This document shows, one piece after another, positions 7,742-46,679 of a stretch of DNA of 64,000 bases (position 1 is its first letter; each line of letters opens with the position of its first letter). A model generated the notes under the pieces. It saw only the letters and a program-made list of their open reading frames with translations, was not told the DNA's origin and searched no databases. The position numbers and the translations under genes are program-made. The stretch is taken from the NCBI GenBank assembly GCA_038087875.1, contig CM075978.1, forward strand, positions 174,778,001-174,842,000, given 5' to 3'. This stretch comes from Malacoraja senta (Eukaryota).

Positions 7742-7909
7742 CTACTTGGGAATCCATTCCGAATAGATACCATCTGCACCTCGCATTTGCTTTATTGGCT
7801 GTGAGTTGTCCGTGTAATTATCCCAACGATTTGTGTTTTCTCCTGTCTTGTTTCCCGTCGTAGCGAGAGGTGGGTAAATCACTTTACCAGGCATTGGTTT
7901 CTGCTTGGT
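7742..7909 (-). CDS. Gene 1 terminal cytoplasmic exon 3, copy A ([55 protein letters not shown])
   Basis: Acceptor ccctctaattttcatctcgcag, phase 0, ITIM-like VIYPPL, stop TAG at 7742-7744; probably the ancestral terminal exon. Confidence 0.72.
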   Translation of the reverse strand, partial: TKQKPMPGKVIYPPLATTGNKTGENTNRWDNYTDNSQPIKQMRGADGIYSEWIPK

Positions 7910-10900
7910 CTGCGAGATGAAAATTAGAGGGAACACATTAGTTCATGTTTTAGCTGCTTTGATCCTCACACAGACCCGAGCGTTTTGCAGGATCAGAAAT
8001 GAAAGTAATAAAATGAACGGGCAGATGTTTGTTTATACCAAAGATTGACACAAAAATGCTGGAGTACGTCAGCAGGTCAGGTCGCATCTCTGGAGAAATT
8101 GGATAATTTACGTTTCGGGTAGGGACCCTTCTTCAGTCTGACTGTCGGCGAGGGACTGGAGAGGGACACATGATCCCCAAGAGGATACATGATTGCGACC
8201 GTGGGACCAGTTAGCCGATTTGCAGTGGAAGGGGCGGGGAGGTGGTGGGGGGGGGGGGGGGGGAGGGTTCCGAATTCGTATAGTAAAAGGTACCTGTGCA
8301 TACAGCGTCCTTTCTTGATTCACCTGCCTTGGAACTTTCCGGGGTTTGCTCAGATTTAGCGCAGCATAAGGCACCATCGCTTCACCTGCACGTTGCATAG
8401 ACTGAACGAGAAAAGTATACATCTTCTCAACAAAGGTGCATTGATTCTTGCGCAGAACGACACTATCAGGCTCTAAAATGGTTTCGAGGGCCCATTACAT
8501 GAATAGTTCCAATGCCAATAACCCATGGGAACGATGTCGATCACTTCTCCTGCTCTAACATTACCCCAAAAAGCAAGTTAAATCAGATTAGCTAATTAAA
8601 TCGCAGTTTGGGGATGGCGGGGGGAGGCGTCCCGAGCCGTAAATGGCCTTTGTTTTCTTCGTAAACGTCTTATTTGCTTATTCCCAACATTTATATACGA
8701 AAAAAAGCAAATTACAGCCAATTGATTGAACGCAAACATTTTCTCTAGTTCCCGGTTTATCATTTGATTTTACATCAAAATTCAGCTTCTGTTTCCAAGT
8801 GAATGACAGACTGTGCTGCAGCATTGGCCTGTCATCTTCTGAGGGGATGCATCAAAAAATGTACAGAAGTCTTAGCTCAAATTTACAAAGCGTAATTTGA
8901 ACTACAACAAATTATGTGGACTGTTTGGATGCCCTTACTGAAAGCAAGGGACATTGTTACAAGAGACAGTTCAGAGAATGTTCACTGAGATGCCAGCGGG
9001 TGCTTTGGGGTTTCGCTTTACGAGGAAAGACAGGACAGCTTGATCCTGTGCTGATTGAACCTTCCCCCCTCCTCCGAGAAGGAGAGGGGATCGACATATT
9101 GCTGTTTTATGGGATTGACAGGGTAAACACTCGGGAATGCTGATAGTCATGAATGAATTTGGAAGCCGCAGTAGCCTCGGGAAATGGGGATGGTGGGGGG
9201 CATTGACATTGAAATGAGGGAATTCGCCAATCAGAAATTGAGACATTTGGGAGCGTCATGCTCCAGAAAGCCACATGAAAATGAAACTCTGATTATATTT
9301 ATCATCAGTATGAGAATCACAATACATGCGTGAATGGCGGAGGAGATGGACGAAGAATGTTGAATAAGCCGAAAGCCTATAGAATGGTGAAATAGACTCG
9401 CTTGGCTTAATGGTCACCTTTTGCTCCCGATGTGATCTGGAATTTTGAATTTTTCACTGAGATGTCGACAACAGGCTGGAACTGCAATTAGTATCTATCG
9501 TGTGTTGTCCTGCGACTATGTTCATGGGCTTGGGGAAGCGCTTCAGGGGAAACTTAAATTAAACAATTTGTGGCCTGTAGTTGCATGCAGGGCGTGCCAG
9601 GCAAATGCGGCAGATATGCATCCGTGATAGGCACTCGTGATTTTGCTCTGAATGTAAGAGCATTTTATTGACCCTCAGCATTTTGTAGGCACAGGTACGA
9701 TTTTTAGAAGTGAGTGCAATATACCAGCTTGGCAATGTGGATTTTCATCTAACATTCGAGTTAACGGACAAAACCCTTTGGACGGTTGTTACCGAGAGGT
9801 ACTGGTAGCAATAACACAGTTAATTAATTTGTGCTGTATAGAAGGCAAGCGCAGTATTTTAACTTTACTTATTTCATACATACCAGTTGCCCAGTAACAT
9901 CGGATCTTTCTTCTTCCTTCCGCGTACCTGGTCAATTATTAATATTAATTACTTATCTAGATTAAGAAATTGAATTTTGTCACCCGAAAAAGACCGTGGA
10001 CATAGAGTTAAGGGTTAATATAGATCGATGGGCATGATCATGTGCAAAGTCATGGCTTTATTGCCGAATCGTTATTAATAATAAGCAAATATGCCGATGC
10101 CGTCAGCCTTTTAATCCTAGTTTGTGTTTTTCGGAAGTCTTGTTGCTGGTAAGGAAATTGAATCTCCAGTTACCAACCTCTCCCAATTGCTGGGGTTCAT
10201 ATCATTTTGACCTGGGAGTGAGCAACTACCAAGTATCCCGTGAAATTGAAACATACTGAGTGGCCGTGAGGGCATCCCTATACTCAAACTGTAGGGATTT
10301 AGTTACCGGTGTTATTCTTTCAGTCTGGATAGTCGTTATTTGACTAATTCAAGTTACAATAAACATGAATGGCGAACAGCTAACGGAATAGCTTACGGGG
10401 GATGAATGAGTCCAGTGTACAAAAGGACAATAAGCTTAACTTTCGTGGTAATATGAATTTTCACAGGATCAATAATTAACGGACTGAAAATAGAAATATA
10501 GAAAGAAAGTGTACAGCAATGTGTACTCATAATGATTTCAGTAGGGGAATCATGCTGGACCAACGGCAAACTTCGTGAAAATTACAGAGAGACACAGCTA
10601 TGGTAATAAAGAAATTTAATCTATCTAGATTTCCAAAATAATGTCAAATAGGTTGGCGACAAAATAAAAATAAAAAAGATCAGAGAATAGTAATTATCGA
10701 CAGGTTGCAGAATAGATTGACGGCTGGCTGTGGGAAAGAAAGCAGACTAAAGTGCAACTGTTCACTAAAGTGCAACTGCTCACGGAAAGCAATGGGCGCA
10801 GTCGTCCCGCTTTCTCTTGTCTTGTTTCCCGTCGTAGCGAGAGGAGCGTAAATCACTTTATCATGCATTGGTTTCTGCTTGGTCTACGAGATAAAAATTA

Positions 10901-13900
10901 GGGAGAAAACATTAGTTCATTTTTAAAACTGCTTTGTATCTCACACAGACCCGAACGTTTTGCAGGATCAGAAATGAAAGTAATCAAATTAACGGGCAGA
11001 TGCTTGTTTATACCAAAGATTGACACACAATGCTGGAGTACGTCAGCGGGCCAGGTCGCATCTCTGGGGAAATTGGATAACTGACGTTTCGGGTAGGGAC
11101 CGTACTTCAGTCTGATTGTGTGTGNNNNNNNNNNNNNNNNNNNNNNNNNNNNNNNNNNNNNNNNNNNNNNNNNNNNNNNNNNNNNNNNNNNNNNNNNNNN
11201 NNNNNNNNNNNNNNNNNNNNNNNNNNNNNNNNNNNNNNNNNNNNNNNNNNNNNNNNNNNNNNNNNNNNNNNNNNNNNNNNNNNNNNNNNNNNNNNNNNNN
11301 NNNNNNNNNNNNNNNNNNNNNNNNNNNNNNNNNNNNNNNNNNNNNNNNNNNNNNGGGGTGATTACTGGAGCCGACGAAACAACAGTGCAAATCGGGCCTG
11401 GCATCAGATGACAGGTAAGCTGGTTCCCTGATAGGTTGACTGTCGGCTAGGGACTGGTGAGAGCACAAGAGGGATACATAATTGCGATCGTGGGACCAGT
11501 TAACCGATTTGCAGTGGAGTAGGTTGGGGGGGGGTGTCCGAGTTCGTATGTTAAAAGGTACCTGTGCATACAGCGTCCTTTCTTGATTCACCCGCCTTGG
11601 AACTTTCCGGCGTTTGCTCAGATTTAGCGCAGCATAAGGCACCATCGCTTCACCTGCACGTTGCATAGACTGAACGAGAAAAGTATACATCTTCTATACA
11701 AAGGTGCATTTATTCTTGCGCAGAACGACACCATCAGGCTCTAAAATGGTTTCGAGGGCCCATTACATGAATAGTTCCAATGCCAATAACCTATGGGCAC
11801 GATGTCGATCATTCTGCTGCTCTAACATTACCCCCAAAAGCAAGTTAGATCAAATTAGCTAATTAAATCGCAGTTTGTGGATGGCGGGGGGAGGCGTCGT
11901 AAACGTATCTATTTGCTTATTCTCAGCATTGTTTTTTTCGTAAACGTCTTTATTTGCTTATTCTCAGCATTTATATACGCAAAGTAGCAAATTACAGTCA
12001 ACTGATTGAGCGCAAACATTTTCTCTAGTTCCCTTTTTTCCCATTTGATTTCACATCTCAATTCAGCTTCTGTTTCCAAGTGAATGTCAGACTGTGCAGC
12101 AGCATTGACAACGGGGAGTGAATTCGCCTTTCAGCATTGACAACGGGGAGTGAATTCGCCTTTCAGAAATTGAGGAAGCAACATGAAGATGAAACACTGA
12201 TTATATTTGTCACCAGCATGTGAATCACAATATATGCATGGATGGCGGAGGAGATGGACGAAGAATGTTGAATCAGCCGGTAACCTATTGTATGGGGAAA
12301 TTGACTCGATTGGCTTAATGGTCACCTTTTGCTCCGGATATGATCCTGAATTTTGAATTCATCACTGAGATGTCGACGACAGGCTGGAACTGCAATTAAT
12401 ACCTATGTTGTGTTGTCCTGCGACTATGGGCATGGGCTTGGGAAGGCGCTTCAGGGGAAAGTTAAATGAAACTATTAGTGGCCAGTAGTTTCATGCTGTG
12501 CGTGCCAGGCAAATACGGCAGATATGCATCCGTGATAGACACTCATGATTTTGCTCTGGATGTAAGAGCATTTAATAGATCTTGGGCATTTTGTAGACAA
12601 CAGGTACGATTTTTAGAAGTGAGTGCAATATATCAGCTTGGCAATATGGATTTTCATCTAGCATTCGTGTTAACGGACAAAGCCCTTTGGGCGGCTGTTA
12701 CCGAGAGGTACTGGCAGCAATAAAACTGTTAATAAATTTGTGCTGTATAGAAGGCAAACGCAGTGTTTTAACTTTACTTATTTCATACATACCAGTTGCC
12801 CAGTAACATCGGATCTTTCTTCTTCCTTCCGCGTACCTGGTCAATTATTAATATTAATTACTTAACGGGATTAAAAAATTGAATTTTGTCACCCGAAAAA
12901 GACGGTGGTGTGATAGAGTTAGGGGTTAATATAGATCAATGGGCATAATCATGTGCAAAGTCATGGCTTTATTGCCGAATCGTTGTTAATAATAGAGCAA
13001 ATATGCCGATGCCTTCAGCCTTTTAATCCTAGTTTGTGTTTTTCGGGAGTCTTGTTGCTGGTACGGAAATGGAATCTCCAGTTACCAACCTCTCCCATTT
13101 GCTGGGGTTCATGACATTTTGACCTGGGAGTGAGCAACTACCACGTACCCCGTGGAAATAAAACATACCGAGTGGCCGTGAGGGCATCCCGATACTGAAA
13201 CTGTCAGGATTTAGTTACCGGTGTTATTCTTTCAGTCTGGATAATCGTTGTTTGACTAATTCAAGTTACAATAAACATGAATGGCGAACAGGTATCGGAA
13301 TACTTTGAAGGGAGGTGAAAGAGTCCAGCGCACAAAAGGGTAATAACCTTAACTTTCATAGTAACAGGAAATGTCACAGGATCAATAATTAACGGACAGA
13401 AAATAGTAATATGGAAAGAAAGTGTACAACAATGTGTACTCATAATGATTTCAGAAGAGGAATCATGCTGGACCAACACCAAACCTCATGAAAATTACAG
13501 AGAGACAGAGCTATGGTAATGAAGAAAATATAATCTGTCTCGATTTCCAAAATAATATCAAATAGGTTGGCGACAAAATATAAATGAAAAACGATCAGAG
13601 AATAGTAATTATCGACAGGTTGCAGCATTAATTGACGGCTGGCTGTGGGAAAGAAAACAGACTAATGTGCAATTGTTCACTGAAGTGCAACTGCTCACAG
13701 AAAACAATGGGCGCATTTATGTCGCTACCAGTACTGCTGATTATTAGGGCTATAATCGAAACTGTTGTCGAAGTTAGGGTAACACATGTTTGGAAGAGTA
13801 ATCCAGTACAGAGGGGAACAACACATTAGGGTAGGATATTAGTGGACTTAAAAATGGACGGAACGGTGAATTCATCATGCAAAGTAATGAATTTTCGCAG

Positions 13901-16900
13901 AAGGAATATGGAAGCCACACACTATGGCATAAGATACACCGCACAGGAACAGACCTCTCGGCCCACAACGGCTTTGCCGAACGCGCTGACACTTTAAATT
14001 AAGCTACTTTGCCCGTACGTCTTCCATATCCCTCCACCCCCTGCATATCCATGTGCCTATTCAAAAGCTTCTGAAATGTCACCAGTACATCTGCCTCCAC
14101 CGACAGCCCTGACAGCGCATTCGAGGCATCCATCTGTCTGTTGAAGAAGCATGCCCCGCATACCTCCTTTAAACTTTGCCCCCTCTCACCTTAAACTTAT
14201 GCCCTCTAATCGTTGATACTGTATTTCTATACTGGGATAAAGGTTCTGACTGCCTACCGCATCTATGCCTCTCATAAATTTACACACTTATATCAAATCT
14301 CTCTGCTGGCATATGCATCCCAGTGAAATCACTGCAAGTCTGTGCAAACCTTTCTTATGGTTAATACGTTGTAATCCTGACAAACCTCCTCTGCACCAAT
14401 AAGCCAAGGAGCACGCCTTCATGTGGCCTCATCAAGGAGCTCACCTTCATAATTTCCTCAATACAATCAAGCAAGTTTATAAGACATGACTCGTCATGGA
14501 CAAAGCCGCGATGACTGTCCCTCATTAGCCGATTTTCTTTGAAATGAGAGTAAATCCTATCTCAAAGTGTCCTCTGCAATAGGTTCCTAACCAGTGACAT
14601 GCTGCTCACCGGTCTGTATTGCCTGGAATATCTCCGCTTCGCTGCTGAATCAAGATTGCTCTCCAGTCCTCCAGGGACTCGGCTGTGACTAGAGAAAATC
14701 TAAAGATCAGCTCTCAATAGCCTGTGATAGGTTCAACCAAGCCATGCGATTTATCCACTTTAATGCTCTTCAAAGGCCCAAACACCACCTCCTTCTTGAT
14801 GTTCAGCTGCCCAATATATCACTTAACCGGACATTGATCTCACTCTGCTGCATACTCAATTTTCCGTGATGAATAGAGATGCAAAGTTCTAATTACTTGG
14901 AAGGTGCCAGTCCATGCGATATGGAGTAAATGGATATTAGATAGAACTCGCACCAGTCAGGAGCATCATAAAACACAAATGAAACACGGTTGAAGGTAGG
15001 AGACTGAAAACGGGAGACATTATGCTAAGCACATTGGACCACAGTCGAGGTAACCAGGAGCGTTCTGGTGTGGCCGGTTTCAAAAAATCTTCAAGAAAAT
15101 GTGAACTATTCATATCAGGAATATAAATAAAGATCACACTCGGTCCCTTTGATTTTGTTAAGAAAGATAAGGGATGACGACGTGGTTGTCTTTAAAATTA
15201 ATGGAAGTTCTGAGAACATTGATATGGAAAGAATGATGCATCTTGTTGGAAAGTTAAAAAACATAGACGGTCATTTGAAGGTAGGACTAAAGAAACGTTA
15301 CGTTAGAAAAAAAATAATTGGGATATTGGAATCAAGGATATTGGAAGCGATGTGCACGCACGACATGGGAAGCCGAGCAAGCAAGCGAGAGAGAAATAAT
15401 AAAGGTTCATGGTCTTAGATTTATAGGACAAATGTGAGAAACTACGAGTGGAGGGCGAACTCAGGCCTGCGCCGCAATGTAATCGGCTGTAATGAAAAAA
15501 TAATGTTTATACCTTTGAGAGTTCCTATGTTTCCCTTTCTGGAGCTATAACCCATTGGAAAAAAATGCTTAAATTATTTCTTACCTTTAATTTTCCTTGC
15601 AGTACAACGCTTTGCAATGACAAGAGCCAATAGGAACGATACAAAACCGCTCACTGCGCATATAGAAATCATGACGTAATTGACGTAACCTGTAAGATTG
15701 AAATGCATCAGGCACATATGAAAATCGTAGCTGCTGAATTCGGAAAATCCCACGTCACTTGTATCTGACGTAATACGCCGCAAGCTCTGAAATTCAGTAA
15801 CAATTTGAACGTTTGTACAAAGCAAAACTTGACAGATGAGAATTTCCAGAAAATGAATCTGGCGAAAATGTAAATCGTTCTGCCTGATGAACAAAGGATA
15901 TTTAACTAAAATTGACGGAGTTGCGAGAAAGGCTGTCAACAGTTACAGCTGATTTTGTAGACCAGCCCTGTGGTTATTCATAACTATTTTCAAGCCAATA
16001 GAACTGTAGTTATTGGTCCCTAAACATCCCCCCACCAACATTTATGGAGTCAAAGAGTCATTCAGTGTGGAAACAGTTCCTTCGGCCCAATTTTACCATG
16101 CAGACCAACATCCCCCATCTACACTAGGTCCCCTTGCCTGCGTTTGGCCCATTACCCTCTAAAGCTATCCTATCCATGCACCAGTCCAAGTGTATTTTAA
16201 ACGTTGTTATGGCACCTGGCTCAACGATCTCCCCTGATAGCTCGTTCCATATACTCACCACAATTTGTGTAAAAAAAGTTGACCCTCAGGCAGATTAAAT
16301 ATTCCCCCCCTCACCTTAAAGCGTTGTCCTCTAGTTTTTGATTCTCCTACTCTGGGCAAAAGAATCTGTACGTTTGCCGTTTCTGTTTATCTCATTATCC
16401 TATACACCCTTCATACCCCTACAGTCCAAAGAATACAGTGTTATTCTGCTCAATCTCTCCCCATAGCTCATGCCCTCGAGTCCTGGGAATGCTCTTCTCT
16501 GCACCCTTCCCAGCTTAACAGCTTATTTCTTCGATCAAACTGGCCAAACCTGAACACAATACTCCAAATGTGGCCTCACCAATATCCTGTGCGACTGTAA
16601 TATGTCATCGTAACTTCTATACTCAATATTCGTAATGACGAAGCCTTTTTGACCAGTAACACCAGTTTCAAGGAACTATGTACCTGCACTCCCAGACCCC
16701 GCTGATTGCCAACACTCCTAGGTGCCCTGCTATTCATTGTTTGACCTTCAGAAAATGCAACACCTCGCACTTATCTGCATTTAACTCCATTAACCATTCC
16801 TCACTCTACCTGCTCAACAGATCAACATCCAGTTGCAATTGTTGATAACCATCTTCAGTCACTTGCCAATTTCCCAAGATTAGGTCGAGGGCTGTCCTCT

Positions 16901-19900
16901 CCGTTGTAGGGCCATACACGTATTGGCTAAGGATATTGTATTGAACATATCTGACCAATTCCTGCTGATCAATGTCCTTAACATTATGACAATCCCAGTC
17001 TAAACAGTGAATGGTATAATATATGGGCGAAGAAATGGTAGATGCAGTTTAATCAGAGCAAGTGTGTGCTGTTGCGCTACGGAAATCGAATGTACCGTAA
17101 ATTTCAAGACCTTGAATCATAGGTCTAGGAACACAGTTCCTTGAGAATGGTAACACAAATTGGTAGCGTGGTAAAGAATGCATTTAGTATATTTGCCATC
17201 ATGGGTCGTAGCACTGAGTACAAGAGCCATGTGATGAGTGGTAACCATGTTGCAACTTTATAAAACTTTGCTTCGGCCGCGTTTGGAACGTTGTGTGCCG
17301 TTCTGCTCGCTCCATTACGGCAAGAATGTGGAGACTTTTGATAGGGCGCAGAACAGATTTATTAAAACAATAGTTAAAATACATTTGGACAGGTACATGT
17401 ATAGGAAAGGTTTAGAAGGATAAGGGCTAAACGTAGGCAAGTGGGACGTGTAGATGGAGCAACTAGGTCGGCATAGGCATGTTGAGCAGAAAGGCCTGTA
17501 TCCATGCTCCATAACTCTCATAGAATGCCGACTGGATTAGAGGATATTGGCCAGCAAGAGAGCTTGGATAACCTTGGATTTTTTTTTCTAGGCCATCGGA
17601 AGTTGAGGGAGACATAAGTACTTACAATTATGAGGGGCATAGTCAGGATAGATGGTTAGAAATCTTTTCCCAGGGAAAACATGAGAAATAATCGCGGGCA
17701 TAACTTTAAGATCAGAGATGTGTGGGGCAAGTTGTTTTTATACAGAGAGTGGTGTGTGCCGGGAAAACGTTGCCAGGGGTGGTGGTGTTGCAGGCAGAAT
17801 CGAATGTGGGCTTTATGAGTCTTTTGTGGAGGCACATCGACATGCAAAGTGTGGAAGGAAATAGATCACTTATAGGGAGTGGAATTATTTTAACTTGCAT
17901 CATGTACGGCACGGACAGTCTGATCCTTGGTGTACTGTTCTATATTATATGTCAAACAAATAAAACTGGCTTTTAGGCCTCATTTTATGAAACTAAGCAT
18001 AGTTTTCATACTTTACAAGAAAAATAGCTTTAAAAAGACCAACCGGAGTATCTGCTTTTTCCTTGTTAAAACGAAACGCCAATATTAGCGATAATATTTA
18101 GTTGATACTTCAGATTAAATCGGAGAGAGCAAACCGGCGGTCCGACTCACAGCTTTAAAATTCAGGAATTTCAATGAGTATATTTTTAGCGTGTTACTTT
18201 ATTTCAAGGTTCAAATTGTTGGAAAATTCCTGACTAGTTATGTCATGTTCAGGGAATGAGGGACGGCGTTTCAGCTCCGTGGCCTTACGGCAAGGAGCGG
18301 ATAGTAGCTCGTGTATCCATCTAACACCTCTGCGCTGATTTACCTGGCCGTAGAGGCAGAATGGCAGAGCGAGATATGTTAGTCGGACAACGGGATCACG
18401 GGAAATGTTAGAATCAAACAATTGTCCCACGCGGTGGCCGGGAAATATTCGTGTGTTTGTTAGAGGAGTGCTGTCATCAAAAACAAAATAATAGTAGACG
18501 CGAGGAGGTCGTTGATATACTGCAGAAATTAGCAGACTCGGATCAATTGTATTTTAAAACGTATGATGTAACTGTTCAGATGTAAGTTGAAACATACAGG
18601 GACATGCTTATATTTTGAGGAATATGGAAGCATACTGTAAACCGGAAAACATATTACAAAATTCTGGTACGCTGATAAAAGATTTAAGGCAGATCTTGGA
18701 ACTTTGAGCCTCATGGAAGCAGTGGATCCAAAAGGACGTGATGCCGTGGTAAATGCTTGAAAATCACTACTTTTTATTGAGGTCTGTGCACAGGTTCTTT
18801 GCGAGAATGATAGATGAGATCATTGTGGCCGGTTCAGTGAAGAGTTGGGAGAAGTTTGGGGTCTTCTCGTTTGGGCCGAAATGAAGGGTAATTGGTCACG
18901 GGAGATGCTTTACTGGGGCAATCTATTTCCGCTGAAGAAAAGGGAAAACCAGCGGTTATACCGTATCGAGGAGATTTGTGGGAATAGCTTTCTTGAGATT
19001 CGGAGTGTAGCGCCTGACACGCTGGAGGTAGCAGCTCCCAATGAATTTGTCAAAAGACAATTTTGCGTGTACTTGATGAGAACATTTGCAGCCACATGGA
19101 AATCTAGCGGATGTGATTATAATAGACGGACCTTCAAGGTTTATAGTTTCAGGCCAGGACTAATGGTAATTCCTATCATGCGACATTTTGTGAGATCTCC
19201 AACTTTACGTATCTTTCTATGGTAATAGAGATGCGCAGTCTTACCTGTGTCGGAGTTGATGACAACGTAAGTGGCTGCTGCAGGAACACGGTGGGTTACA
19301 TGATTCACAAGGCAGGTGTAAACGGTGCCGCTCGGGACATACTGTGTCACTGATAATCGGCTGGAAGCTTCATACAATCCATCTGCGGTGGGCTTGTTGC
19401 TATTAACCAAATCCGTTGTAGTTTTTCTACCATCTTGATACCACATGAAGCTGATATTCTTTGGGTAAAAGGGAGATGTCGCGCAGAGAATAACGAAGGA
19501 TTCCGTCTTCTCGGGAATTCCAGAATAAATGTTCAATGGAGTTGGCGGAACTAGGGAATGAAGGTTAGTGATACGTTTATATTAGTAGAAAATGAGTGCG
19601 CGGAGTGTGAATGGTTTCTGTGAGGCGGATTCGCGCGTTCATTGTGCTTTTATAATAATGTAAACGGAACCTTTATACCCGAATTTAAATCAGAGATAAC
19701 GTTTACTCGTGCTGTCTAGTGAAGAAAAACATGATGGTAAATGTATATCCCACCCTGCGGCCTGTAGAGACTCTTCTCCGACTCCCAATTCCTCCGTCTA
19801 CGCCGCTTCTGTGCCCAAGATGAGGTGTTCCATACCAGGACATCTGAGATGTCCTCATTCAATCGGAAACAGGGATTCCTCCCTTCCATCATAAACGATG

Positions 19901-21770
19901 CCGTCACTGGGGTCTCCTCGATGTCCCGCAGCTCCGCGCTTGCTCCCCCTCCCCCAGTCGCAACAGGGACATAGTCCCCCTAGTCCTCACCGTTCTCCCC
20001 AACAGCCGTCGCATACAGCACATAATTCTCCGGCATTCTCGCCACCTCCAACGGGATCCTACCACTAGCCAACACTTTAACTCCCCGTCCCATTCCCACA
20101 CTGATCTTTTTGTCCTGGGCCTCCTCCATTGTCAAAGTGAGGCCCAGCGCAAATTGGAGGAACAATACCTCGTAATTCGTTTGGGCAGCTTACACCCCAG
20201 CGGTATGAATATTAACCTATAATTTCAAGTACCCCTTGCCTTCGCTCTCTCTCCACCCATCCCCTTCCCAATTCTCCGACTAGTCTGACTGTCCTCGTTT
20301 ACATTTCATCTCTGTTTACTTTATTGTTCCCTTTTCCTAGCTAACAATGATATATTCTACATTTCCCCTGATCGGCATCCCCTTTGTCTCGTTTTCACAC
20401 CATACACTTCCTTATTTCTGTATCTCCGTCTCCACTGACAGTGTGAAGAAGGGTCTCGACCCGAAACGTCACCCATTCCTTCTACCCAGAGATGCTGCCA
20501 GTCCCGCTGAATGACGCCAGCATTTTGTGTCTATCTTCGGTTTAAACCAGCATCTGCAGTTCCCACAACATGATGGTACATTCTTGCAACACTGCCGTCT
20601 CGGGTAAATGCCAAACATGTAAATGTTCTGCTGCCGACTATTTCCCCGATCATTTGCAAACATTGTGAATAAACAATTCTGAAAATTGTAATTTAGTCGT
20701 GATATGAGAATTTTAGGTGGTAGGTCCCGAACACCATGCAGGTCATTTGAAATGTTGAGGGAAATTTGGGTTCCGATTCTTCGCTATTTTACGTTCGCAA
20801 CATTAGCGTCCAAACTTATTCATGTGGAGGCCACGGTTACAATTGAATGACTCTAACGTCCAATATAAAAACAAACAGTCCTCTTGATCTAACGCAGGCG
20901 AAATGGTACATCATATGGGGTCACCCACTACGACAGTTGCACATGTCTTTTCCGTATTCACAACGGGCACTACAATGCTACCTGTATTGTACTAATGTTA
21001 TGCTGTGCTTTCGAAATAAACTTCCAATACATAAGATACGTTTTGATTAATATCGCTAAAACGTATTGTTTATACATATCAGCATGCAGACCATCTATGG
21101 TATGATTTACCAATTGCAATATTAATAGTATTCATCTGGCTGTATGAATGATTCAAATCTGAAAAAACACGTTACTTGCAGGGCAATATCACAGTCGCGA
21201 AATCGCATTCGTTACACGTTTAAACCTACTTACCCAACACAACTAAAGTCGACCCGGTTCCGTTGCCAACTAAAGTGCCCCAGAGCGTGATGGTACAATA
21301 ATATACTCCGGCATCCTGTCGGCTCACATTGACTATTTTCAGGAAGCCACTGAATTTAGTACCGACGCCGGAAACCGTTCTCCCGTCAGGGTCTGAGATG
21401 AAAAAAACATTTTCACCCTGTTTCCACCAATGTACGCTTACGCTGGGCCCTTCACGAAAGAAGGGAACAGAGCAGTGAAACGAAGCATTTTGGCCCGTCG
21501 AGACATTCACTGCTTGAGGAACTTGAGTTACTTTGTCTGCAGTTTTCCCATTACCTAAAGGAAAGAAAAACAGGCCCGATTAGGAATATTTCACCCCAGA
21601 AGGTTAAACGTAGGAGCAGGGCTAATTGCAAATGGAAATAAAGACACGCATTAAAGAATCCTTGAATATATGTAGGTTTTAGTCTGTATAAAGGGTTTAT
21701 GGGGATGCCATGTACCTGTGAAAATTATCCCCCAAAAAGAGAAACAGCGAAGTGCAATGCTGGACAACAT
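7742..21770 (-). CDS. Multi-exon gene 1: non-rearranging VJ-C1-TM IgSF receptor with ITIM/ITSM-type tail (NKp30/SIRP/PRARP-like architecture). Exons 21770-21716, 21554-21234, 19550-19245, 15689-15585, then cytoplasmic exons copy B (12836-12793, 11669-11562, 10883-10680; 380 aa) and/or copy A (9927-9884, 8401-8294, 7909-7742; 368 aa)
   Basis: All exons have GT/AG boundaries and compatible phases (1-1-1-1-0-0), with no in-frame stop when spliced. Summed CDS is 1143 nt with tail B or 1107 nt with tail A. Domains recognised from canonical Ig Cys/Trp motifs. Confidence 0.88.
8294..8401 (-). CDS. Gene 1 cytoplasmic exon 2, copy A ([36 protein letters not shown])
   Basis: 106/108 nt identical to copy B, intact splice sites, ITIM VPYAAL. 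Confidence 0.75.
9884..9927 (-). CDS. Gene 1 cytoplasmic exon 1, distal copy A
   Basis: 44/44 nt identical to 12793-12836, with intact splice sites. Confidence 0.65.
10680..10883 (-). CDS. Gene 1 cytoplasmic exon 3, copy B ([24 protein letters not shown]... running across the duplication junction)
   Basis: Acceptor ctaatttttatctcgtag, phase 0, ITIM VIYAPL. Homology to copy A ends at 10811; the frame continues into junction/intron-derived sequence to TGA at 10680. Confidence 0.65.
   Translation of the reverse strand, partial: TKQKPMHDKVIYAPLATTGNKTRESGTTAPIAFREQLHFSEQLHFSLLSFPQPAVNLFCNLSIITIL
11125..11354. other. Assembly gap (230 N)
   Basis: Run of n. Confidence 1.
11562..11669 (-). CDS. 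Gene 1 cytoplasmic exon 2, copy B ([36 protein letters not shown])
   Basis: 108 nt, phase 0-0, acceptor ttttctcgttcag, donor CAG|GTACCT. ITIM VPYAAL plus a second tyrosine motif TLYAQ. Confidence 0.82.
12793..12836 (-). CDS. Gene 1 cytoplasmic exon 1, proximal copy B ([15 protein letters not shown])
   Basis: 44 nt, phase 1 to 0, ccag| and CTG|GTATGT; identical to copy A; bridges the TM and ITIM exons in frame. Confidence 0.75.
13900..14850 (-). mobile_element. Degenerate CR1 fragments (intron of gene 1)
   Basis: Decayed PEDWR..PGNYRPVS, SHRGFV..SCLINL and 3' end motifs on the minus strand. Confidence 0.65.
15585..15689 (-). CDS. Gene 1 transmembrane exon [35 protein letters not shown]
   Basis: 105 nt, phase 1-1, acceptor tttcaatcttacag, donor AG|GTAAGA. 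About 22 uncharged residues followed by a basic stop-transfer segment. Confidence 0.88.
16030..17860. mobile_element. Degenerate CR1 fragments, minus (~16030-16860) and plus (~17010-17860)
   Basis: [20 protein letters not shown]; antisense ggtgaggccacatttggagta. Confidence 0.7.
19245..19550 (-). CDS. Gene 1 C1-set Ig exon
   Basis: 306 nt, phase 1-1, acceptor ccttcattccctag, donor AG|[15 protein letters not shown]...[21 protein letters not shown]...[13 protein letters not shown]...TVYTCLVNH shows the C1 signatures C-x4-FYP-x2-I-x3-W, DGxY-x-x-S-S-x-L and YxCxVxH. Confidence 0.95.
19690..20570 (+). mobile_element. Penelope-like element 3' part (RT C-terminus/GIY-YIG end) in the V-C1 intron
   Basis: [31 protein letters not shown]; [19 protein letters not shown]; characteristic tail. 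Confidence 0.7.
21234..21554 (-). CDS. Gene 1 V-set Ig exon with germline-encoded J-like strand
   Basis: 321 nt, phase 1-1, acceptor tttttctttcctttag, donor G|[34 protein letters not shown]...VHWWKQ...[36 protein letters not shown] contains the B-strand Cys, C-strand Trp, DxGxYYC and GxGSxLxV. Confidence 0.95.
21716..21770 (-). CDS. Gene 1 leader (signal peptide) exon [18 protein letters not shown](G)
   Basis: 55 nt from ATG to a phase-1 donor AG|GTACAT; hydrophobic core; 161-nt intron to the V exon acceptor. Confidence 0.8.
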
Positions 21771-21896
21771 TCTGCAGCAAGTGATCACAGGGCGTGTGGA
21801 GCAGTAAACGTTTCTGAAGGTTGAATTGTCAGACGATGAAGCACGTCACTCCTTCTGTGACTGCAGCGCGGCTCTTGTCGATGTGGTGAGACTTAC

Positions 21897-21960
21897 TTTT
21901 ACTTGCATTGCTGTCAACAGCGGCACAATCGTCTGTGGACCATTTCACTGAATGAAGAGA
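21897..21960 (-). other. Possible 5' UTR exon of gene 1 (upstream boundary unknown), containing a 9-codon uORF
   Basis: Strong donor AAA|GTAAGT at 21896 and acceptor ttgctgcag| one base before the leader ATG. A TAA in the leader frame makes it non-coding. Confidence 0.35.
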
Positions 21961-23819
21961 AAGCAATACACCAAACAAATATAACGTAGAGCTCTAAAAA
22001 CCTGCGTTTTGCATCTAGTTGGGCTAAATTGACTCCCCGCCTCCCCAATCAAACCACTCATTTTACAAACCCCAACCCTCGCAGTCCCATTCCGCCATCT
22101 CAACGTCATCATTCCGGATCCCTACCATCCCTGACCACGACCCACCGCTCCCCCCCCTCCCCTCACCGCACCGCCGATTTCATACCTTATCGCTTCCACC
22201 CCAGTAATCGGCGAGTCCTTATGCTAACACAAGCTATGATGAGGACATTTAAGCACTAATCCAGAGTTTTGAAATTCCCCTGCTCTCCATACTGAATTCA
22301 GGTTGATTTTTCGCACAGGATGACGAGAAAATTCCTAATTTTGCTCAGTTAGTCTGCAAAAACATCGGTACACTGTTGTGCAATGATAGCGGAAGTTTGC
22401 GTCATTTCAGCAGAAAAATCTGCGAAATCATTTCAGATGAGAAGGGGGAGATCCATTGGTCTATAGTTTAGCAAATAAAAAGATAACACATTCTTGAAGT
22501 TCTTAACAGAGGGAGGTATTCGCTATTCAACAGAGATTGCTGGGGTAACTGCTTCGAGTTGAACAGGAAACAACCATAAATTGCTTCACCGCTGCTCCTG
22601 AGGCATTTGTTCTTCTGTTGTCGGCGTTTCTGCTTTCGCCACCACTGAAAAGCTCTCAGTGTCACATCGGTTTGGTCAAACGGTTTTGTATAAACCCATA
22701 ACCGACGTGGATGGCGGTGGGCGGGCACGGTGAAACAGATAGCATGAAATTTGTTGCCCAGATGGTGGGGTTTGGACCGACTATTACAGGGTTTCCAAGC
22801 AGAAATAGCGTTCACCGCCGTAACACATATACCGATGAAACTGCTCGCTGGAAATGCCGAAATACGTGCCAAAAATTGCTAAGCATGGAGGAAATCAAGC
22901 AAGACCCAATACTTCATAATTTGGTTGTCCCGGCAGTGATACAGTCACGGTTAGTGTAGTTTAGTGTCGGGGAGTGGATGCAAGCGGAGGGGAGAGTGCA
23001 TGTATACAGGTTAAACTATGTAAACGTCGATGAAGAATTCACAGGGGTTGTACGGACACCTGCTTCTACAATTTGCGCAAAGCTGTTTGATTGCTAATAA
23101 AGGAGTTGAGCGATTAATTACTACCAAGTTATCAGTTCACATAAGCAATTCAATTGCTCCAAATCCGGGAGGATTTAGAAAACAGCGGAATAAACTGCAT
23201 GGTTATTTGGAATATGATATTGGCAAGATAATCGTTTGCGAAATATACGACAACGAATACCGGTTCCTAATACCATATTCTATATTTGAGTATGGTGAAT
23301 TCTCTGTGAAGAATAGCTAATTGTATGAGTTGTGATTATATAAAAATAGCTTGGCAAAGTTTGCTGGGATGCAGGGAAATCAGTATCTCACTGTTAGTTC
23401 TTTTTTTTAATCTTCCTAGATACTCCAATGTACTTGCATACGACATTTGGTCATTGTAGTCTGAACTGCTTTACTACATAGGGACGCGAAACCTGAAGGT
23501 AACTGGAGACTCCACAGATATCCAAATGGAATGTATTCAGAAAGCAAAGAGGCCCAGTCCTGCTTTACGTACACGGTGCTTCAAGCTACTGTATATGCAA
23601 GGCGGGTGCCACAGTTGAAAGTAATGACCTGGATTAGTAATTGCCTAAAGTAGTTGAAAGTACGGACCTGAATTAGAGGGTTTATACTATAGTATTGTCA
23701 CATCCTTGTGTGCTAGTTGTCAATCAATGCCCGAATCCCAATAATCCATGGAAATCCGTATATTACAAGGACTAAGGAACTCTGGACAGATACGTTTTCT
23801 TATATCATGGCATAACCGT

Positions 23820-24490
23820 TCCCTTCATGAAAGCAAGACAAAGAAGTTATGATCGACTTCGGCAAGCGACGCGGTGCACATACCCTGGTATACATTGTTG
23901 CTGCTGAAGTAAAGATGGCTGAAAACTCCAGGTTTTTAGGAATACATATCACCAACAACTTGTCCTGGACCAGCCACGTCGATACAATGGCAAAGAAAGC
24001 ACACCAATACCTCTACTCTCTTAGAAGGCTTGGGCAGTTACGCATGTCCCCAACAGCCCTGCCTCAAAAGATGCGCCATTGAAAACATTTTATCGGGACG
24101 CATCAAGGCATGGTTTGGGAACAGCTACACCCAAGACCGCTAGAAATTACAGAGAGTTGCGGAGGTACCCCAGACTACCGCGTAGACTAACCTCTCTTCC
24201 ATTGACTCCATCTGCACTTCGCACTCTACCTCGGCAACGCCACCAGCATAATCCACTTCGCCCCCTCTTCCATCAGGCAAAAGGTACAGGTATGAAAATC
24301 CATTTCTGCAGATTCAGGGACAATTTATTCCTAGCTGTTATCAGACAACTGAACTATTCTCTCGTGAACTAGAGAGCCGTCCTGATTCCCATCCACCTCA
24401 TTGGAGACCTTGTTTACTGGACTTTATCGTATCCTTAACGGTATAGCCTTATCCTCTATCCTAATATCACTGTGGACGACTTGATATTAT
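23820..24490 (+). mobile_element. Degenerate Rex1/Babar-like LINE 3' fragment
   Basis: FLGIHITNNLSWTSHVDTMAKKAHQYLYSLRRL. Confidence 0.7.
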
Positions 24491-25359
24491 AGTCTTTTCA
24501 CTGACTCACAGAAGTGAGGGGTATTGGGATCTGGCACAGAAGAGAAGTTGAGTTGCGCCACGGTGAGTTTCAACGATGGGGCATGTGTGAAGGCCTTCTG
24601 TATGCATATGTTCCTGTGACAAAGTGCACAATATCTTGTGTAGGATATTCCTTTTCTCCAGAGATGCTGCCTGAACCGATGAGTTAACCCCCCGCATTTT
24701 GTGTCAATCAGCAATATATTGTTGTTAATCCCGCACCTGACTGCTCATATTAACAAAGAGACGACTGGGCACACGTAAGCACACACAGGTATATTTGGGA
24801 AAATACCAAAATGGATTCGCGTTTGATTCATCGAATCAGAATGGAGAACAGTGAACAAATGAATTAGAGTGAAGTGGAGGGATGAGATACACCTGTATTT
24901 GGAATGGTATCCGTTCAGTGGATATAGTAAGCTTTGTGCATGGGAGACGAATTTGCCAGAGTATTTTGAAGATGCAACAAAGAAGATTGCTGGTGCCAGG
25001 GCCATAGACGTCGTCTAACTGGACTTTAGCAAGGCCTTTGAGAAGTACAAAGGACAGTATAGCAAAGGAACGGGCCTTTTGGCCAAGTATATCTGCTCCG
25101 AATATGATGCGAAGTTAAACTAAACGGTTAATACAAGAACTTATTTCTGATATCATCTCAAGATTAGACTAATTCCGTATCATATGATTATTGTCGTCTT
25201 GTGTAAAACTTCGTTTACCTGGGCTTACATGGGACTATCATCAAAGCGATAACGTCTGCTTATCTGCCTATAGCCATGAAGCATTCGATAGATTTTCAAG
25301 TAGATCAGAAAGGAGAAATTTTAACCTAACCCGATTTTCATAATGAAGTACAATTTCTA

Positions 25360-25651
25360 AATGTTTAGAGACACAGCATGGGAACAGGCTTATGGTTCAC
25401 TGAGTCCACGCTGTGCATTGATCATCCGTTCATACTCTTTCTATGTTTATCCCACTTTCTCATCCAATGTCACCACACTAGGAACAATTTACAGCGGCCA
25501 ATTAACCTACAATCCTGCGTACCCGGAGAAAACACATGCAGTCACCGGGAGAACGTGCACGCTCCACATAGACACCACCTGAAGTCAGGATCAAACCCAG
25601 GTATTTGGCGCTGCGAGTCAACGGCTCTACATACTGTGCCACTGTGCCGCC
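25360..25651 (-). mobile_element. tRNA-derived V-SINE-like element
   Basis: Antisense ggcggcacagtggcacagt...gggtttgatcctgac head and ttctcccggtgactgcatg core; similar to 63765-64000. Confidence 0.6.
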
Positions 25652-27809
25652 CCACATTCCACCAGTGTCAGACTGAACCCATGCAAGTGTGTGGCGGATG
25701 TGTGTGTGTCTGTATGTGCGTTTCTGTGCGTGTGTGCGTTTGCGCAGGCCGGGGCAATTGATTGAGAAAGATTTATATATATTGTGAAATAATAAGGCCC
25801 CGGCACTGATACCAACGGCACGCTAGTAGTAATTGCCTGCCACCATGAGTAAACCATTCATCGTGTTTATGGTGGTAAGGGGTTAGCAAAAGTGTTTCGC
25901 TGGTTCTGTCTGCCACAATGCGTTGAACCAGATTCATCAACAAAAAAACTCGTTACGACATTTAAAAGACCGTTGGACAGATACATGGATAAGAATCACG
26001 TGGAGGAATGGGGTCTAGGAGCAGCCACATGGGACTAGGTCGGTTGGCATAGACGAGTTGGGCTAATGTCCGGTTTCAGTGCCGTGTAGCTCTGTGCCTC
26101 TATGTATTCAGTAGATTTGGGTGAAACATGACTCCACGTAAAGATATCCACGCCGAATATATCCTACTCTCTTAATATGATTTGGATGTTCGATCGTCTA
26201 TCGTAACGAGTATCTGTACGTAAATATCGCAAGGATGTCAGGCGCATTTTGGCCACAAGGATATAATGAAAACAGGAGGGTGAAACAGTAAGTTGTGACA
26301 TTATCATAATGTGGAAACATAACAGAGGATGTTAGTAACAATACCAGACAATGGATACAATATATTCCTGCACTAACTTTTTCTTACCATGTTTTCTTTA
26401 CAATCAAATGAAGGACGATAACCATTCATCCACACGTGTTAGATTCATCAATAACATCTATTAAATTATTAAATTACAATGCAAGGATTTATTATTGGAT
26501 ATCATATTCCACGTTGAATGTCCAGTACATTGTTAGACATTTATTGTTTTGGAAAGCATGTCGTGGAAGTGCTACAGTTCTACCTTTTAAAAATATTCGA
26601 CAGTGATGTTTAGCGAATTTTGGACGATGGGAAAATTGACCTGCAAGGACCAGCGGGATCGTTTCTCGGCACGCTGCAAATCACATCAATAGTGGATTGT
26701 AGACGAAGGCAGACCTTGTTAGTCCATCATTAGGGGGGGGGGGGGGGGCTGGCGGGGCTTTATGCTGATCATTTACAATTTTATGTGGCGGGCCTTCGAG
26801 ATATCTGCCCATCCCATTGCCTGCTCACCTACTTCCGTTATGTTCTTGCATAGGTGCCCCAGAATAGGGCGCAGGGAATGTTGATTCGAGGCCTTCGACG
26901 ATCAGTGAACTCCACAGAGATTGTAATGTTCCATCGAGACAACAAAAACAATATTTTATTCTGTTTTTACTAATTCAATTGTTTAATAATGTTATGCTTA
27001 AACAGAAATATAAATTCAAATAATTTTCCAAAATAATGTCCCATCAAAAAGTCCTCCGAATCTACTTGTTGGTTAATATTTAGTGCCAAAGAAAATACCC
27101 GCCATATTATCATGGGACACAATTGCACAAGGATTTGTTGTTATTAGAATTTGTGCGTACACTTATTTTAATTAAGCAATTCTCAAACAAAGAAATAATA
27201 ATTTTGACCCGTGTTTAATGATATGTAGTGTGGAAAACCACTTTAAAATGCACCCGCAAGAATCGGGTCAGGCAGTCAACGCTATACTTGTTCAAAGAGC
27301 GCCTTATTCAACGGCCGTTGCGAACAGACAAACTAGACCGTTCCCAGAACAAAGATCACATGATGTTCTACAGTTTTTTACTGCGTTGTCCGTTTAGACT
27401 TTAATTAACCCAACATTCCTCCGTTATCAGAATGTTTTGATAAAGGCTGTGAATTATGCACTTCAGTTTGGCACATCGTCTTGCTCTGGCTTTCTTCTAA
27501 TCACCCCCCAAGGCAGCTATGTAAAATGTCCCATTACCGTTCGGCCCTCTATTCCCTTTCCCCTTTCTGGTTCTGTTCTTTCAAAATCCCTCCCTTATAA
27601 TTTAAGTACAAGCTTTATTTGTTACTTTTGTTACTTTGTTACTTCTCTTCGATGTTTACGAGGCACGTGCACATCATTTTCAATGATTTCGCAGCTATCC
27701 AATAAACTTGTGATCACAAGGCACTGTTTGGAGGGTATATGTGTCCGGAAACCCTATTGGTGATCGAGGATCTGAGCTTTGGGGAAAAAGGAGATACTTT
27801 GTTCCATCA

Positions 27810-28650
27810 TCATCAGCAACATTTATGAAGCGCAAAAGCCATGAACAGTACTAGAATTATGGGAACGAAGACATATTACCTATGCACCAAGGAGGCCCCT
27901 ATCAATCCCAGCCCACCCTTTGCACATCCCCACCTTGACCATGTGCTCCTCTTACTGTATCTGGGCAGCGTCTTTGCCGATATGGCCAGCCAGGTTGCTG
28001 ATGTTATCTTTTGCATCATGGTTAAATTAAAAACTTTCAGATCCTATGATGGCACTTGTTCCTCCTTTTTCTGCTAGGAAGAAATACAAAGCTATTCAGT
28101 TCTGCAGGCCAATCATCAGGATGGCCATCATCTCCGCATTTATTTCTTGAAGGCTATGGCAATGTCATTGATAATCTTTTCTAATGCAGAGGCGAGGTTG
28201 ATGGTCTCTCCCGCCACCTTCGATGGTCTTTCTCACCCCGAACCAAGAGATTGCAGTAACAAGGAACATTTCAGATTCAGTGACGGTTCGTATGGTCAGT
28301 GTTCCACTGAGAGTGCGTTCGGGGTAACGTGGTGGTGTCGCAGACAAAAAGGCATCACGTAGGCTAGATAGGCAAGCTTGCCACAATCCTGGGGAAACCC
28401 CTAGGGCCGCAGACACAGTATACACCATTGTAGGTGGTAAAGAATTCTACCGAGTGGGGAATCCGGTGTCTTAAAAGAAGTCTCCAGTTGAATAGTTACA
28501 GGCCATAACATGACTGTATTCCCTTCGTGTAGCATCAAGCATATTGAAATATTGATGGGCCAAAATGCTCCCCACTTCTACGCGTCCCCTCTCTTGCCTG
28601 ACAAGGCAAATTGCTTCTTCAGGCCTTCCTTCACCCGATATATTAGTGAG
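27810..28650 (-). pseudogene. Endogenous retrovirus env remnant (TM subunit and end of SU)
   Basis: INAEMMAILMIGLQN*IALYFFLAEKGGTSAIIGSE (28036-28107 is the ISD/CKS-17-like part), preceded by ETINLASALEKIINDIAIAFK and SEMFLVTAISWFG; downstream hydrophobic YVFVPIILVLFMAFAL. Confidence 0.8.
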
Positions 28651-28804
28651 AGTCAAGAAAGTGGAAGTTGTACGGGGAACTGCAGAAGCTGGTTAAAACC
28701 GAAGACAGACACGAATATTTGGAGTAACTCAGCGGATCAGCCAGCATCTCTGGTGAAAAGTAATAGGTGATGTTTCGGTCGAGACCATTCTTCAGAAAGA
28801 GGAA

Positions 28805-29571: not shown

Positions 29572-29574
29572 TTG

Positions 29575-46646: not shown

Positions 46647-46679
<33 letters not shown>

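Follow-up and report, generated by a model that had tools for sequence, protein, structure and literature searches.

A probable SIRP-like VJ-C1 receptor gene with a duplicated ITIM-type tail in the skate Malacoraja senta

The minus strand of the 64-kb stretch of Malacoraja senta DNA analyzed here (the window) contains coding segments for a V domain already joined to a J-like strand, a C1-set domain, a transmembrane (TM) stretch and a tail with tyrosine motifs, which raises the question of whether this locus is a functional gene and, if so, to which kind of immune receptor it belongs. Judged from its sequence, the region holds a single intact gene, maintained by selection and with predicted splicing, that encodes a type I membrane glycoprotein, and the best reading of its product is probably a SIRP-like inhibitory receptor that has one C1 domain instead of two. 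No other recognizable genes were found in the 64-kb window.

Exon structure and domain assignment

The gene model consists of seven phase-compatible exons, as the original prediction held, which lie on the minus strand and have AG/GT at all junctions, and its predicted product runs from a split leader through a single-exon V(J) domain, one C1-set domain and an uncharged TM to an ITIM-type tail, with a length of 368 amino acids when the B copy of the tail is used and 380 with the A copy. Exon 1 (21716-21770, 55 nt, ending in phase 1, donor CACAG/GTACAT) holds the ATG, at 21770, and most of the signal peptide, whereas exon 2 (21234-21554, 321 nt, phase 1 to 1) encodes V together with the J-like G strand. 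The C1-set domain, with its YTCLVNH motif, is encoded by exon 3 (19245-19550, 306 nt, phase 1 to 1), and a short stalk, the TM and the basic stop-transfer sequence KRCTARKIK by exon 4 (15585-15689, 105 nt, phase 1 to 1). No second Ig-like exon was found between V and TM, in 15.7-21.2 kb, leaving a single C1 exon.

The three tail exons (cyt0, cyt1 and cyt2) are present in two copies, also on the minus strand. Copy A comprises cyt0 (12793-12836, 44 nt, phase 1 to 0, identical to copy B), cyt1 (11562-11669, 108 nt, 2 of which differ from copy B), with the ITIM VPYAAL at 11625-11642 and TLYAQ at 11562-11576, and cyt2 (10680-10883), with VIYAPL at 10839-10856 and a stop at 10680-10682, the first 73 nt of which are homologous to cyt2B. 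Copy B comprises cyt0 (9884-9927), which is 100% identical to the B copy of Amblyraja radiata, cyt1 (8294-8401), with VPYAAL at 8357-8374 and TLYAQ at 8294-8308, and cyt2 (7742-7909), the native terminal coding exon, which reads from VIYPPL (7865-7882) to GIYSEWIPK and a stop, this end and stop being kept in A. radiata. A direct splice from TM to VPYAAL was rejected, as the canonical acceptor leads into a stop, an internal AG being the sole alternative in frame; the phases agree once the 44-nt cyt0 exon, which was revealed by the A. radiata protein, is included. An exon following the TM (acceptor 15487), which reads ADYIAAQA and a stop, was likewise set aside and is left only as a possible short alternative ending.

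Exon 2 was assigned to the V-set (Pfam 2.8e-10), and the best PDB matches of its AF2 model (pLDDT 87.7) in Foldseek were shark VNAR, TCR V-alpha and Ig lambda V. The J-like motif GTGSTLVV (21238-21261) lies within this exon, V and J being contiguous, and a scan of 21100-21700 for RSS heptamers and nonamers was empty; the germline-joined VJ without RSS that had been proposed from the sequence is thus confirmed, as is the proposed leader. The proposed C1-set domain was also confirmed, and the competing C2-set assignment was not, because Pfam gave 1.3e-12 for C1-set against 0.012 for C2-set and 0.012-0.015 for the CD80-like and butyrophilin C-sets, and because the AlphaFold (AF2) model of exon 3 (pLDDT 90.8, D strand present) matched MHC class II beta2 domains in all of its best 50 Foldseek PDB matches, with a TM-score of about 0.8. 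Moreover, a residue check found no charged residue in the TM stretch, and no cysteine was found between C1 and TM, so that the uncharged TM and the missing hinge cysteine of the original prediction both stand.

Tail duplication and conservation in Amblyraja radiata

The tail exons belong to two tandem copies of a unit of about 2.9 kb on the minus strand (B 7837-10700 and A 10811-13615, spanning 7837-13615) that are 90% identical, with cyt0 and cyt1 taken together identical at 150 of 152 positions and the introns at about 89%. The original prediction had described one tail with the motif VIY(A/P)PL; the tyrosine motifs stand, but the single tail does not, since that composite motif came from merging tandem copies of the tail exons that carry VIYAPL in A and VIYPPL in B. 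An assembly artefact was rejected as the source of the duplication, the copies being 10% apart and each having its own orthologue in A. radiata. The tail of about 110 residues holds two canonical ITIMs ([ILVS]xYxx[ILV]), VPYAAL (Y289) and VIYPPL (Y325), and further tyrosines. Past the duplication junction near 10811, cyt2A continues into formerly intronic sequence that is open to its stop, and a candidate donor in this exon (between 10784 and 10783) would give a predicted 452-aa isoform that stays in frame. With the tail exons present twice, ITIM tails could be produced as alternatives or in concatenated form.

An assembly gap (11125-11354) lies within the cyt1A-cyt2A intron, in a stretch that is present in A and absent from B. 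Both flanks of the gap are collinear with copy B and with the A. radiata orthologue, and the seven exons are therefore uninterrupted. An optional exon-like ORF of 33 codons on the minus strand (11355-11453), with a good acceptor and phase 0, has its counterpart in an extra exon of the RefSeq model for A. radiata; neither copy B nor other members of the family contain it, and the donor of the ORF is unreadable because the ORF ends exactly at the gap edge.

The orthologue in A. radiata agrees with the M. senta gene in its exons and shares the tail duplication. The TM exon is 96% identical between the two species and the leader exon is 96-98% identical to two leader exons of the A. radiata locus, whose model XP_032892405.1 appears to have two C1 domains as a result of two tandem genes being merged in it. 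One could regard the skate locus as a decaying or no longer functional member of a birth-and-death cluster, its open frame being a leftover, and such decay would be compatible with an ectodomain dN/dS near 1 (about 1.2 for V and 0.6-0.8 for C1 against A. radiata), with an exon identity (93-96%) barely above that of the introns (about 91-93%), and with the fate of cyt2A, which was truncated by the duplication and in A. radiata has lost its tyrosine motif through a 12-nt deletion that removes YAPL. The dN/dS pattern fits fast immune-receptor evolution, but weak constraint too. We consider decay very unlikely, however, as the seven exons show no stop, frameshift or broken splice site in either species although indels accumulated at 5.9 per kb in the surrounding DNA: not one indel against A. 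radiata is present in the coding sequence, where neutrality would predict about 6.6 (P = 0.0014), and there are no stops, an outcome with a chance of 0.069 under neutral drift, so that the joint chance of an intact frame is about 1e-4. Also retained are the framework residues, the two disulfide cysteines and the J motif.

A cartilaginous-fish family and its probable kinship with SIRPs

By homology, the gene is one member of a VJ-C1 multigene family found throughout cartilaginous fish, with relatives in skates, rays, sharks and chimaera. The searches returned 87 proteins at E below 1e-10, a count that also takes in unrelated multi-Ig proteins; the best-matching relatives share V, C1, TM and ITIM tails, and RefSeq models in other species join these same parts. 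The relatives that were looked up are all chondrichthyan, and none outside cartilaginous fish was found by word-indexed homology search, a limited method whose result is not proof of absence. The family is annotated in RefSeq for a dozen or more species of cartilaginous fish, most commonly as 'tyrosine-protein phosphatase non-receptor type substrate 1-like', that is, SIRP-alpha-like, and otherwise as SIRP-beta-like, tapasin-related-like, Ig-lambda-like, NCR3LG1-like or CD276, this variety being most likely the outcome of automatic naming in a family that has no name of its own. No description of the VJ-C1 family was found in literature searches on PRARP, on chicken SIRP, or on SIRP in combination with shark, elasmobranch or cartilaginous fish. 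The earlier suggestion of a possibly uncharacterized family is thus partly sustained, no describing paper having been found, but RefSeq already annotates the family and its tail is of the SIRP-alpha type, so it is not a wholly new class.

Short-tailed relatives often have an Arg at the start of the TM (ISRC, CVRIMC, ICRSIGG, PRSAMGG), and one such relative from Leucoraja is 89% identical to the skate gene product across V-C1. In a V-C1 tree, which had SIRPs as sole outgroup, left out near-duplicate isoforms and is silent on placement relative to Ig, TCR and UrIg, the Arg-TM short-tailed forms interleave with the ITIM forms. These relatives suggest a paired receptor family.

Descriptions of SIRPs come from tetrapods, and the case for their kinship with the antigen-receptor precursor has drawn on their V(J)-C1 make-up. 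In BLASTP against bovine SIRP-alpha, V and C1 aligned with 29% identity over 208 aa, in one collinear stretch with D1-D2, and the TM and tail aligned too. The family tail HMM scored 54 bits on the bovine protein, with all four tyrosine motifs in order, against 9.8 for the best of 2000 shuffles. On this comparison, the ancestral tail of the family would have carried four tyrosine motifs collinear with those of mammalian SIRP-alpha; motifs 1-3 are kept in the tail of the skate gene and the fourth is lost. An ITIM followed about 20 residues on by TxYxx(I/V) is seen in many inhibitory receptors, and therefore part of the tail similarity could be convergent. Besides, the family and the SIRPs share the succession of a V domain with a J-like strand, C1-set domain(s), TM and tail, a phase-1 end of the TM exon, a phase-0 intron that closely precedes the first ITIM, and the coexistence of inhibitory members with short-tailed members that have Arg or Lys in the TM (for SIRP features, including the basic-TM short-tailed members, see PMC12975943). 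The differences are that SIRPs have two C1 domains and the skate gene one, and that the latter has duplicated its tail exons, lost the fourth motif and has an extra intron between the two tyrosine pairs, whereas in muntjac SIRPA all four tyrosines are in one exon.

The ectodomain is at least as close to antigen-receptor domains as to SIRP. The family C1 HMM gave 48.7 bits for human C-lambda, 42-45 for SIRP-alpha D3, 40 for UrIg2 C1 and 31-36 for SIRP D2, per-domain scores that do not discriminate SIRP from Ig/TCR; likewise, V and C1 profile searches of solved structures are dominated by multi-domain chains and give no ranking of SIRP versus Ig/TCR. Taken together, a SIRP-like inhibitory receptor with one C1 domain is the likely identity of the product. 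The anatomy of the invariant inhibitory receptor in the original prediction is upheld and an inhibitory role would be a reasonable expectation, with SIRP as the nearest known kind. In such a receptor, the V domain would bind a cell-surface or pathogen ligand and Src-family kinases would phosphorylate the ITIM tyrosines, on which SHP-1/SHP-2-type phosphatases could dock and damp the activation of the receptor-bearing cell, while activating relatives with nearly the same ectodomain may signal in the opposite direction through an adaptor.

Alternative origins and comparison with other receptors

Among non-rearranging genes, a comparison can be made with UrIg, which is secreted and has three C domains, and UrIg2, which has nine or more; UrIg and the recombinant UrIg2 ectodomain are disulfide-linked dimers, and no ITIM is mentioned in the paper describing them (PMC12227049). 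These genes, too, come from cartilaginous fish, and they resemble the skate gene in their split leader, their VJ within one exon and their C1-type domains; the skate gene differs from them in its one C1, its ITIM tail and its lack of a hinge cysteine. It is conceivable that the family is an independent cartilaginous-fish offshoot of the antigen-receptor/UrIg lineage, a non-rearranging VJ-C1 relic that is not SIRP kin and that obtained its ITIM/ITSM tail by convergence or exon shuffling. A single-sequence C1 search of solved structures speaks for this origin, with UrIg2 as best match, followed by IgM, MHC II and light chains, and SIRP absent from the top 60, as do the first place of C-lambda in the C1 HMM, the structural neighbors of the V model, the cartilaginous-fish relatives that alone emerged from the word-indexed searches and a tail intron layout unlike that of mammalian SIRPA. 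Against a separate origin stand, however, the match of the tail to SIRP-alpha over all four motifs in order and spacing, the collinearity of V and C1 with D1-D2 and the occurrence of inhibitory/activating pairs in both SIRPs and this family, and SIRP D3 scores as high as the UrIg2 domains; we therefore regard it as unlikely. A relationship to the antigen-receptor precursor has been proposed for SIRP as well, and kinship with SIRP and descent from the UrIg lineage are thus not fully exclusive. A combination of the two, which we hold to be quite improbable, would make the family the cartilaginous-fish form of a common stock of SIRPs and rearranging antigen receptors, a membrane-bound non-rearranging VJ-C1-TM protein already in inhibitory/activating pairs, of which the activating form may work like TCR and BCR, through a charged TM and an adaptor. 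If this were true, UrIg and UrIg2 would be secreted or long-stalked cousins, and a living animal would be available for the study of the pre-RAG receptor.

The RefSeq names of several family members (NCR3LG1-like, CD276, tapasin-related) point instead to a B7/butyrophilin-type ligand or a tapasin-related protein, and B7 proteins likewise combine a V with a C-type domain. This identity is extremely doubtful in view of the C1-set score, which far exceeds that of the CD80-like and butyrophilin C-sets, the J-type GxGxxLxV strand of V, the ITIMs in the tail and the absence of a tapasin N-terminal domain. The B7, tapasin and light-chain identities taken from RefSeq names were accordingly discarded on domain type, J motif, tail and the lack of an RSS. 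With Ig light chains and TCR the skate gene shares the V(J) and C1 layout, the best structural matches of its V domain and the top C1 score of C-lambda, and it differs from them in having no RSS, no separate J segment and no interchain cysteine after C1, and in having signaling motifs in its own tail.

The PRARP paper reportedly describes genes with a V domain alone in birds and a V-C2 rather than a V-C1 layout in other groups, so that the VJ-C1 parallel drawn with PRARP in the original prediction is weak. NKp30 consists of one V domain without a C1, has a charged TM and signals through adaptors, in contrast with the C1, uncharged TM and ITIMs of the skate gene. NCR3 (NKp30), which has a non-rearranging VJ-type V domain as the skate gene does, is the other non-rearranging, MHC-linked VJ gene (PMC12227049), and PRARP, from a 2019 study cited in PMC10751288, is a non-rearranging VJ gene with an ITIM-bearing tail.

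A large SIRP-like family in skates, rays, sharks and chimaera, its V-C1 ectodomain being simpler, would push this lineage back to the base of jawed vertebrates, and the family would stand beside UrIg and UrIg2, the currently favored non-rearranging relics, adding a membrane-bound, signaling and paired version. For annotation, the automatic names now borne by this one family number six or more and are unrelated to each other, and two genes are fused in at least one RefSeq model. The tail duplication, which is common to two skate genera, offers a clean case for the gain and loss of tyrosine motifs in inhibitory tails.

Gene structure and domain classes

The gene on the minus strand at 7742-21770 is one ordinary gene of a large cartilaginous-fish family of SIRP-like, paired VJ-C1 receptors, and its significance rests more with this family than with the gene itself. 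The original prediction was confirmed as an observation and had the anatomy right; the gene belongs to a family that is automatically annotated, yet apparently undescribed in the literature.

A search of the window placed every motif of the prediction (VPYAAL, TLYAQ, VIY(A/P)PL, GTGSTLVV) on the minus strand. Per-base inspection of splice sites and translation of the joined exons gave the claimed seven exons, with AG/GT at each junction and compatible phases throughout: leader (21770-21716, 55 nt, phase 1 at its end), VJ (21554-21234, 321 nt), C1 (19550-19245, 306 nt), TM (15689-15585, 105 nt) and three tail exons available from either of two tandem copies, A or B, namely cyt0 (44 nt), cyt1 (108 nt) and the terminal coding exon cyt2. 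The small cyt0 exon was recognised only through comparison with the Amblyraja radiata relative; a direct splice from the TM exon to the VPYAAL exon was ruled out by a phase mismatch. With the B tail, the predicted product has 368 aa, including a signal peptide of 19 residues, five ectodomain N-glycosylation sequons and two intradomain cysteine pairs. As had been claimed, no cysteine lies between C1 and the membrane and the TM stretch is uncharged. The tail tyrosines sit in VPYAAL, TLYAQT, VIYPPL, DNYTDN and GIYSEW. An exon-like piece 95 nt past the TM exon (15462-15487, minus strand; acceptor cattacag) encodes ADYIAAQA and then a stop in the incoming phase, and may be an alternative, short-tailed ending lacking ITIMs.

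The second exon matched Pfam V-set (2.8e-10), together with Ig_3 and I-set. Its model (pLDDT 87.7) is compact, without a clear C'' strand, and its best structural matches were shark VNAR, TCR V-alpha and Ig lambda V. The J-type strand is contained within this exon, and neither an RSS heptamer nor a nonamer occurs within it or nearby, in keeping with a germline-joined VJ. The third exon scored 1.3e-12 with Pfam C1-set vs 0.012-0.015 with C2-type models, and a model of the window's own C1 domain, built from an alignment of 34 family members (pLDDT 90.8), had only MHC class II beta2 domains among its 50 best Foldseek PDB matches, with TM-scores near 0.8. Because sequence profile and structure agree in this way, the predicted C1 class stands over a C2/I-set assignment.

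A probable paired receptor family and its relation to SIRP

Exhaustive HMMER searching with the V domain returned 87 proteins below 1e-10, a count that takes in unrelated multi-Ig proteins. The best matches share the full layout of a V domain with a GxGxxLxV strand, a C1 domain with YxCxVxH, a TM segment and tyrosine-rich tails. Among the relatives looked up, all come from cartilaginous fish (Leucoraja, Amblyraja, Hemitrygon, Hypanus, Mobula, Pristis, Narcine, Scyliorhinus, Mustelus, Heterodontus, Heptranchias, Hemiscyllium, Chiloscyllium, Pristiophorus and Callorhinchus). Their commonest RefSeq name is SIRP-alpha-like (PTPNS1-like), beside SIRP-beta-1-like, tapasin-related-like, Ig lambda-1-like, NCR3LG1-like and CD276 homolog. 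In the V-C1 tree, two other skates group with the skate gene, two rays join next, and Heterodontus and Scyliorhinus after them, all in well-supported clades; short-tailed and ITIM-tailed forms are intermixed. Some of the short-tailed forms may be truncated gene models. Many short-tailed members have an Arg where the TM begins (ISRC, CVRIMC, ICRSIGG, PRSAMGG), in place of the ISGCAGG-like sequence of ITIM forms, and over V-C1 one of them, from Leucoraja, shares 89% identity with the skate gene. Such a pattern is characteristic of families with paired inhibitory and activating members.

Several comparisons bear on kinship with SIRP. The family tail HMM aligned all four tyrosine motifs of bovine SIRP-alpha in order (35.7 bits for the end-to-end match, 54.3 bits in total), while 2000 shuffles gave a mean of 0.5 and a maximum of 9.8; motifs 1-3 survive in the skate tail and the fourth has disappeared. 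By BLASTP, the skate V and C1 aligned to D1 and D2 of bovine SIRP-alpha, its V and first C1 domain (29% identity, 208 aa), and a second alignment ran from C1 against D3, the other C1 domain, through the TM into the tail. A whole-profile search of solved structures ranked SIRP-alpha fourth, a single collinear alignment spanning V and C1. The family C1 HMM scored human C-lambda at 48.7 bits, SIRP-alpha D3 at 42-45, UrIg2 C1 at 40, IgM C-mu2 at 39 and SIRP-alpha D2 at 31-36; on these scores, the ectodomain does not single SIRP out. Two features are shared with muntjac SIRPA: a TM exon ending in phase 1, and a phase-0 intron before the first ITIM tyrosine, eight codons away in SIRPA and ten in the skate gene. 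SIRPA, however, has its four tyrosines in one exon, whereas an intron in the skate gene parts the two tyrosine pairs. SIRP has two C1 domains, unlike the present family, which is therefore not filed as SIRP proper; it is probably kin of SIRP and would be expected to work like it.

Two papers, on UrIg2 (PMC12227049) and on the shark MHC (PMC10751288), discuss non-rearranging VJ and VJ-C1 genes (UrIg, UrIg2, NKp30, PRARP). No description of the present family was found in the former, as judged by mentions of SIRP and ITIM, or in the sections consulted of the latter, and the open-access literature searched yielded nothing on SIRP in cartilaginous fish.

Tail duplication and selection

The three tail exons lie in a unit of ~2.9 kb that occurs twice in tandem (A, 10811-13615; B, 7837-10700; 90% identical), a lineage-specific duplication. 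Hence the ambiguity of the predicted VIY(A/P)PL: the sequence is present, not as a single ambiguous motif but as two exon copies. Across cyt0 and cyt1, 150/152 positions are identical between copies, the introns being about 89% identical. Both differences lie in cyt1 and change the amino acid, none being silent, which is better explained by gene conversion or by constraint at the nucleotide level than by simple selection on the protein, though the numbers are small. As the duplication junction falls within cyt2, cyt2A retains only the first 73 nt of the exon, followed by formerly intronic sequence and a stop at 10680; cyt2B keeps the native end, GIYSEWIPK and a stop. A donor-like site in cyt2A (10784|10783) would allow an in-frame splice to cyt0B, giving a possible 452-aa form with a doubled tail.

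The intron between cyt1A and cyt2A holds an N gap (11125-11354) in a stretch present in copy A and missing from copy B. On both sides of the gap the sequence is collinear with copy B and with the orthologous interval in A. radiata, which supports continuity; the gap affects none of the exons in the seven-exon model. At the gap edge ends an exon-like ORF of 33 codons (11453-11355, minus strand) with a good acceptor; its donor, if there is one, would lie within the gap letters. This ORF is the counterpart of an additional exon that the RefSeq model of A. radiata contains; it is missing from copy B, and alignable family tails pass from ...YAQ directly into TKQ... with no matching exon. The copy B intron contains a run of about 20 G (8240-8262, plus strand), shorter at the matching site of copy A, where the extra stretch, with the gap beside a short (TG)n, follows about 170-180 nt further on.

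In A. radiata, the locus of XP_032892405.1 (CM021382.1) holds two tandem family genes (at 18968-29759 and 41700-55484 of the retrieved locus sequence), whose V exons share 97% identity; the second matches the M. senta gene in all seven exons and also has both tail copies. XP_032892405.1 (493 aa) is a fusion to which the first gene contributes V and C1 and the second contributes C1, TM and tail, so its "two C1 domains" result from a RefSeq model that spans two genes. Between species, A-to-A and B-to-B identity is 93% vs 87-90% for A-to-B, and the tail duplication is thus older than the M. senta/A. radiata split. Over 14 kb, 6.05% of sites differ, with 5.9 indels per kb, but the 1107-nt coding sequence has zero indels and zero stops. 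The neutral chances of this are 0.0014 (no indel) and 0.069 (no stop); because such an outcome is improbable under neutrality, selection is preserving the reading frame. V shows a dN/dS of about 1.2 and C1 one of 0.6-0.8, a pattern usual among fast-evolving immune receptors, and the changed sites include the CDR3-like loop (LW vs RR). The native end of cyt2B is conserved to the same stop, and cyt2A looks dispensable, since a 12-nt deletion has removed its YAPL in A. radiata.

Other features of the window

A lone minus-strand exon at 54239-54355 (...SYAALDLSRSKMVSSMKDTEERTTYAE then GT) is homologous to the family cyt1; the window contains none of the V, C1 and TM exons that would belong to this paralogue. 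Between the skate gene and the next family exon lie a second assembly gap (29714-29903) and a long AT-rich block (34000-46000, GC 0.28-0.31). Minus-strand stretches at 51877-52011 and about 53800 match the non-Ig N-terminal part of Leucoraja XP_055505064.1 (55% identity, 35 aa). The first lies at the edge (51.9 kb) of a GC-rich block spanning about 48-52 kb, the second just past it (53.8 kb); both could represent non-coding exons further upstream, or else an artefact of the Leucoraja model. Repeated fragments at 2620-2835 (plus), 48932-49216 (minus) and 58770-59216 (plus) match the N-terminal, non-receptor part of one family gene model (P0044) and are probably transposable-element pieces taken into it.
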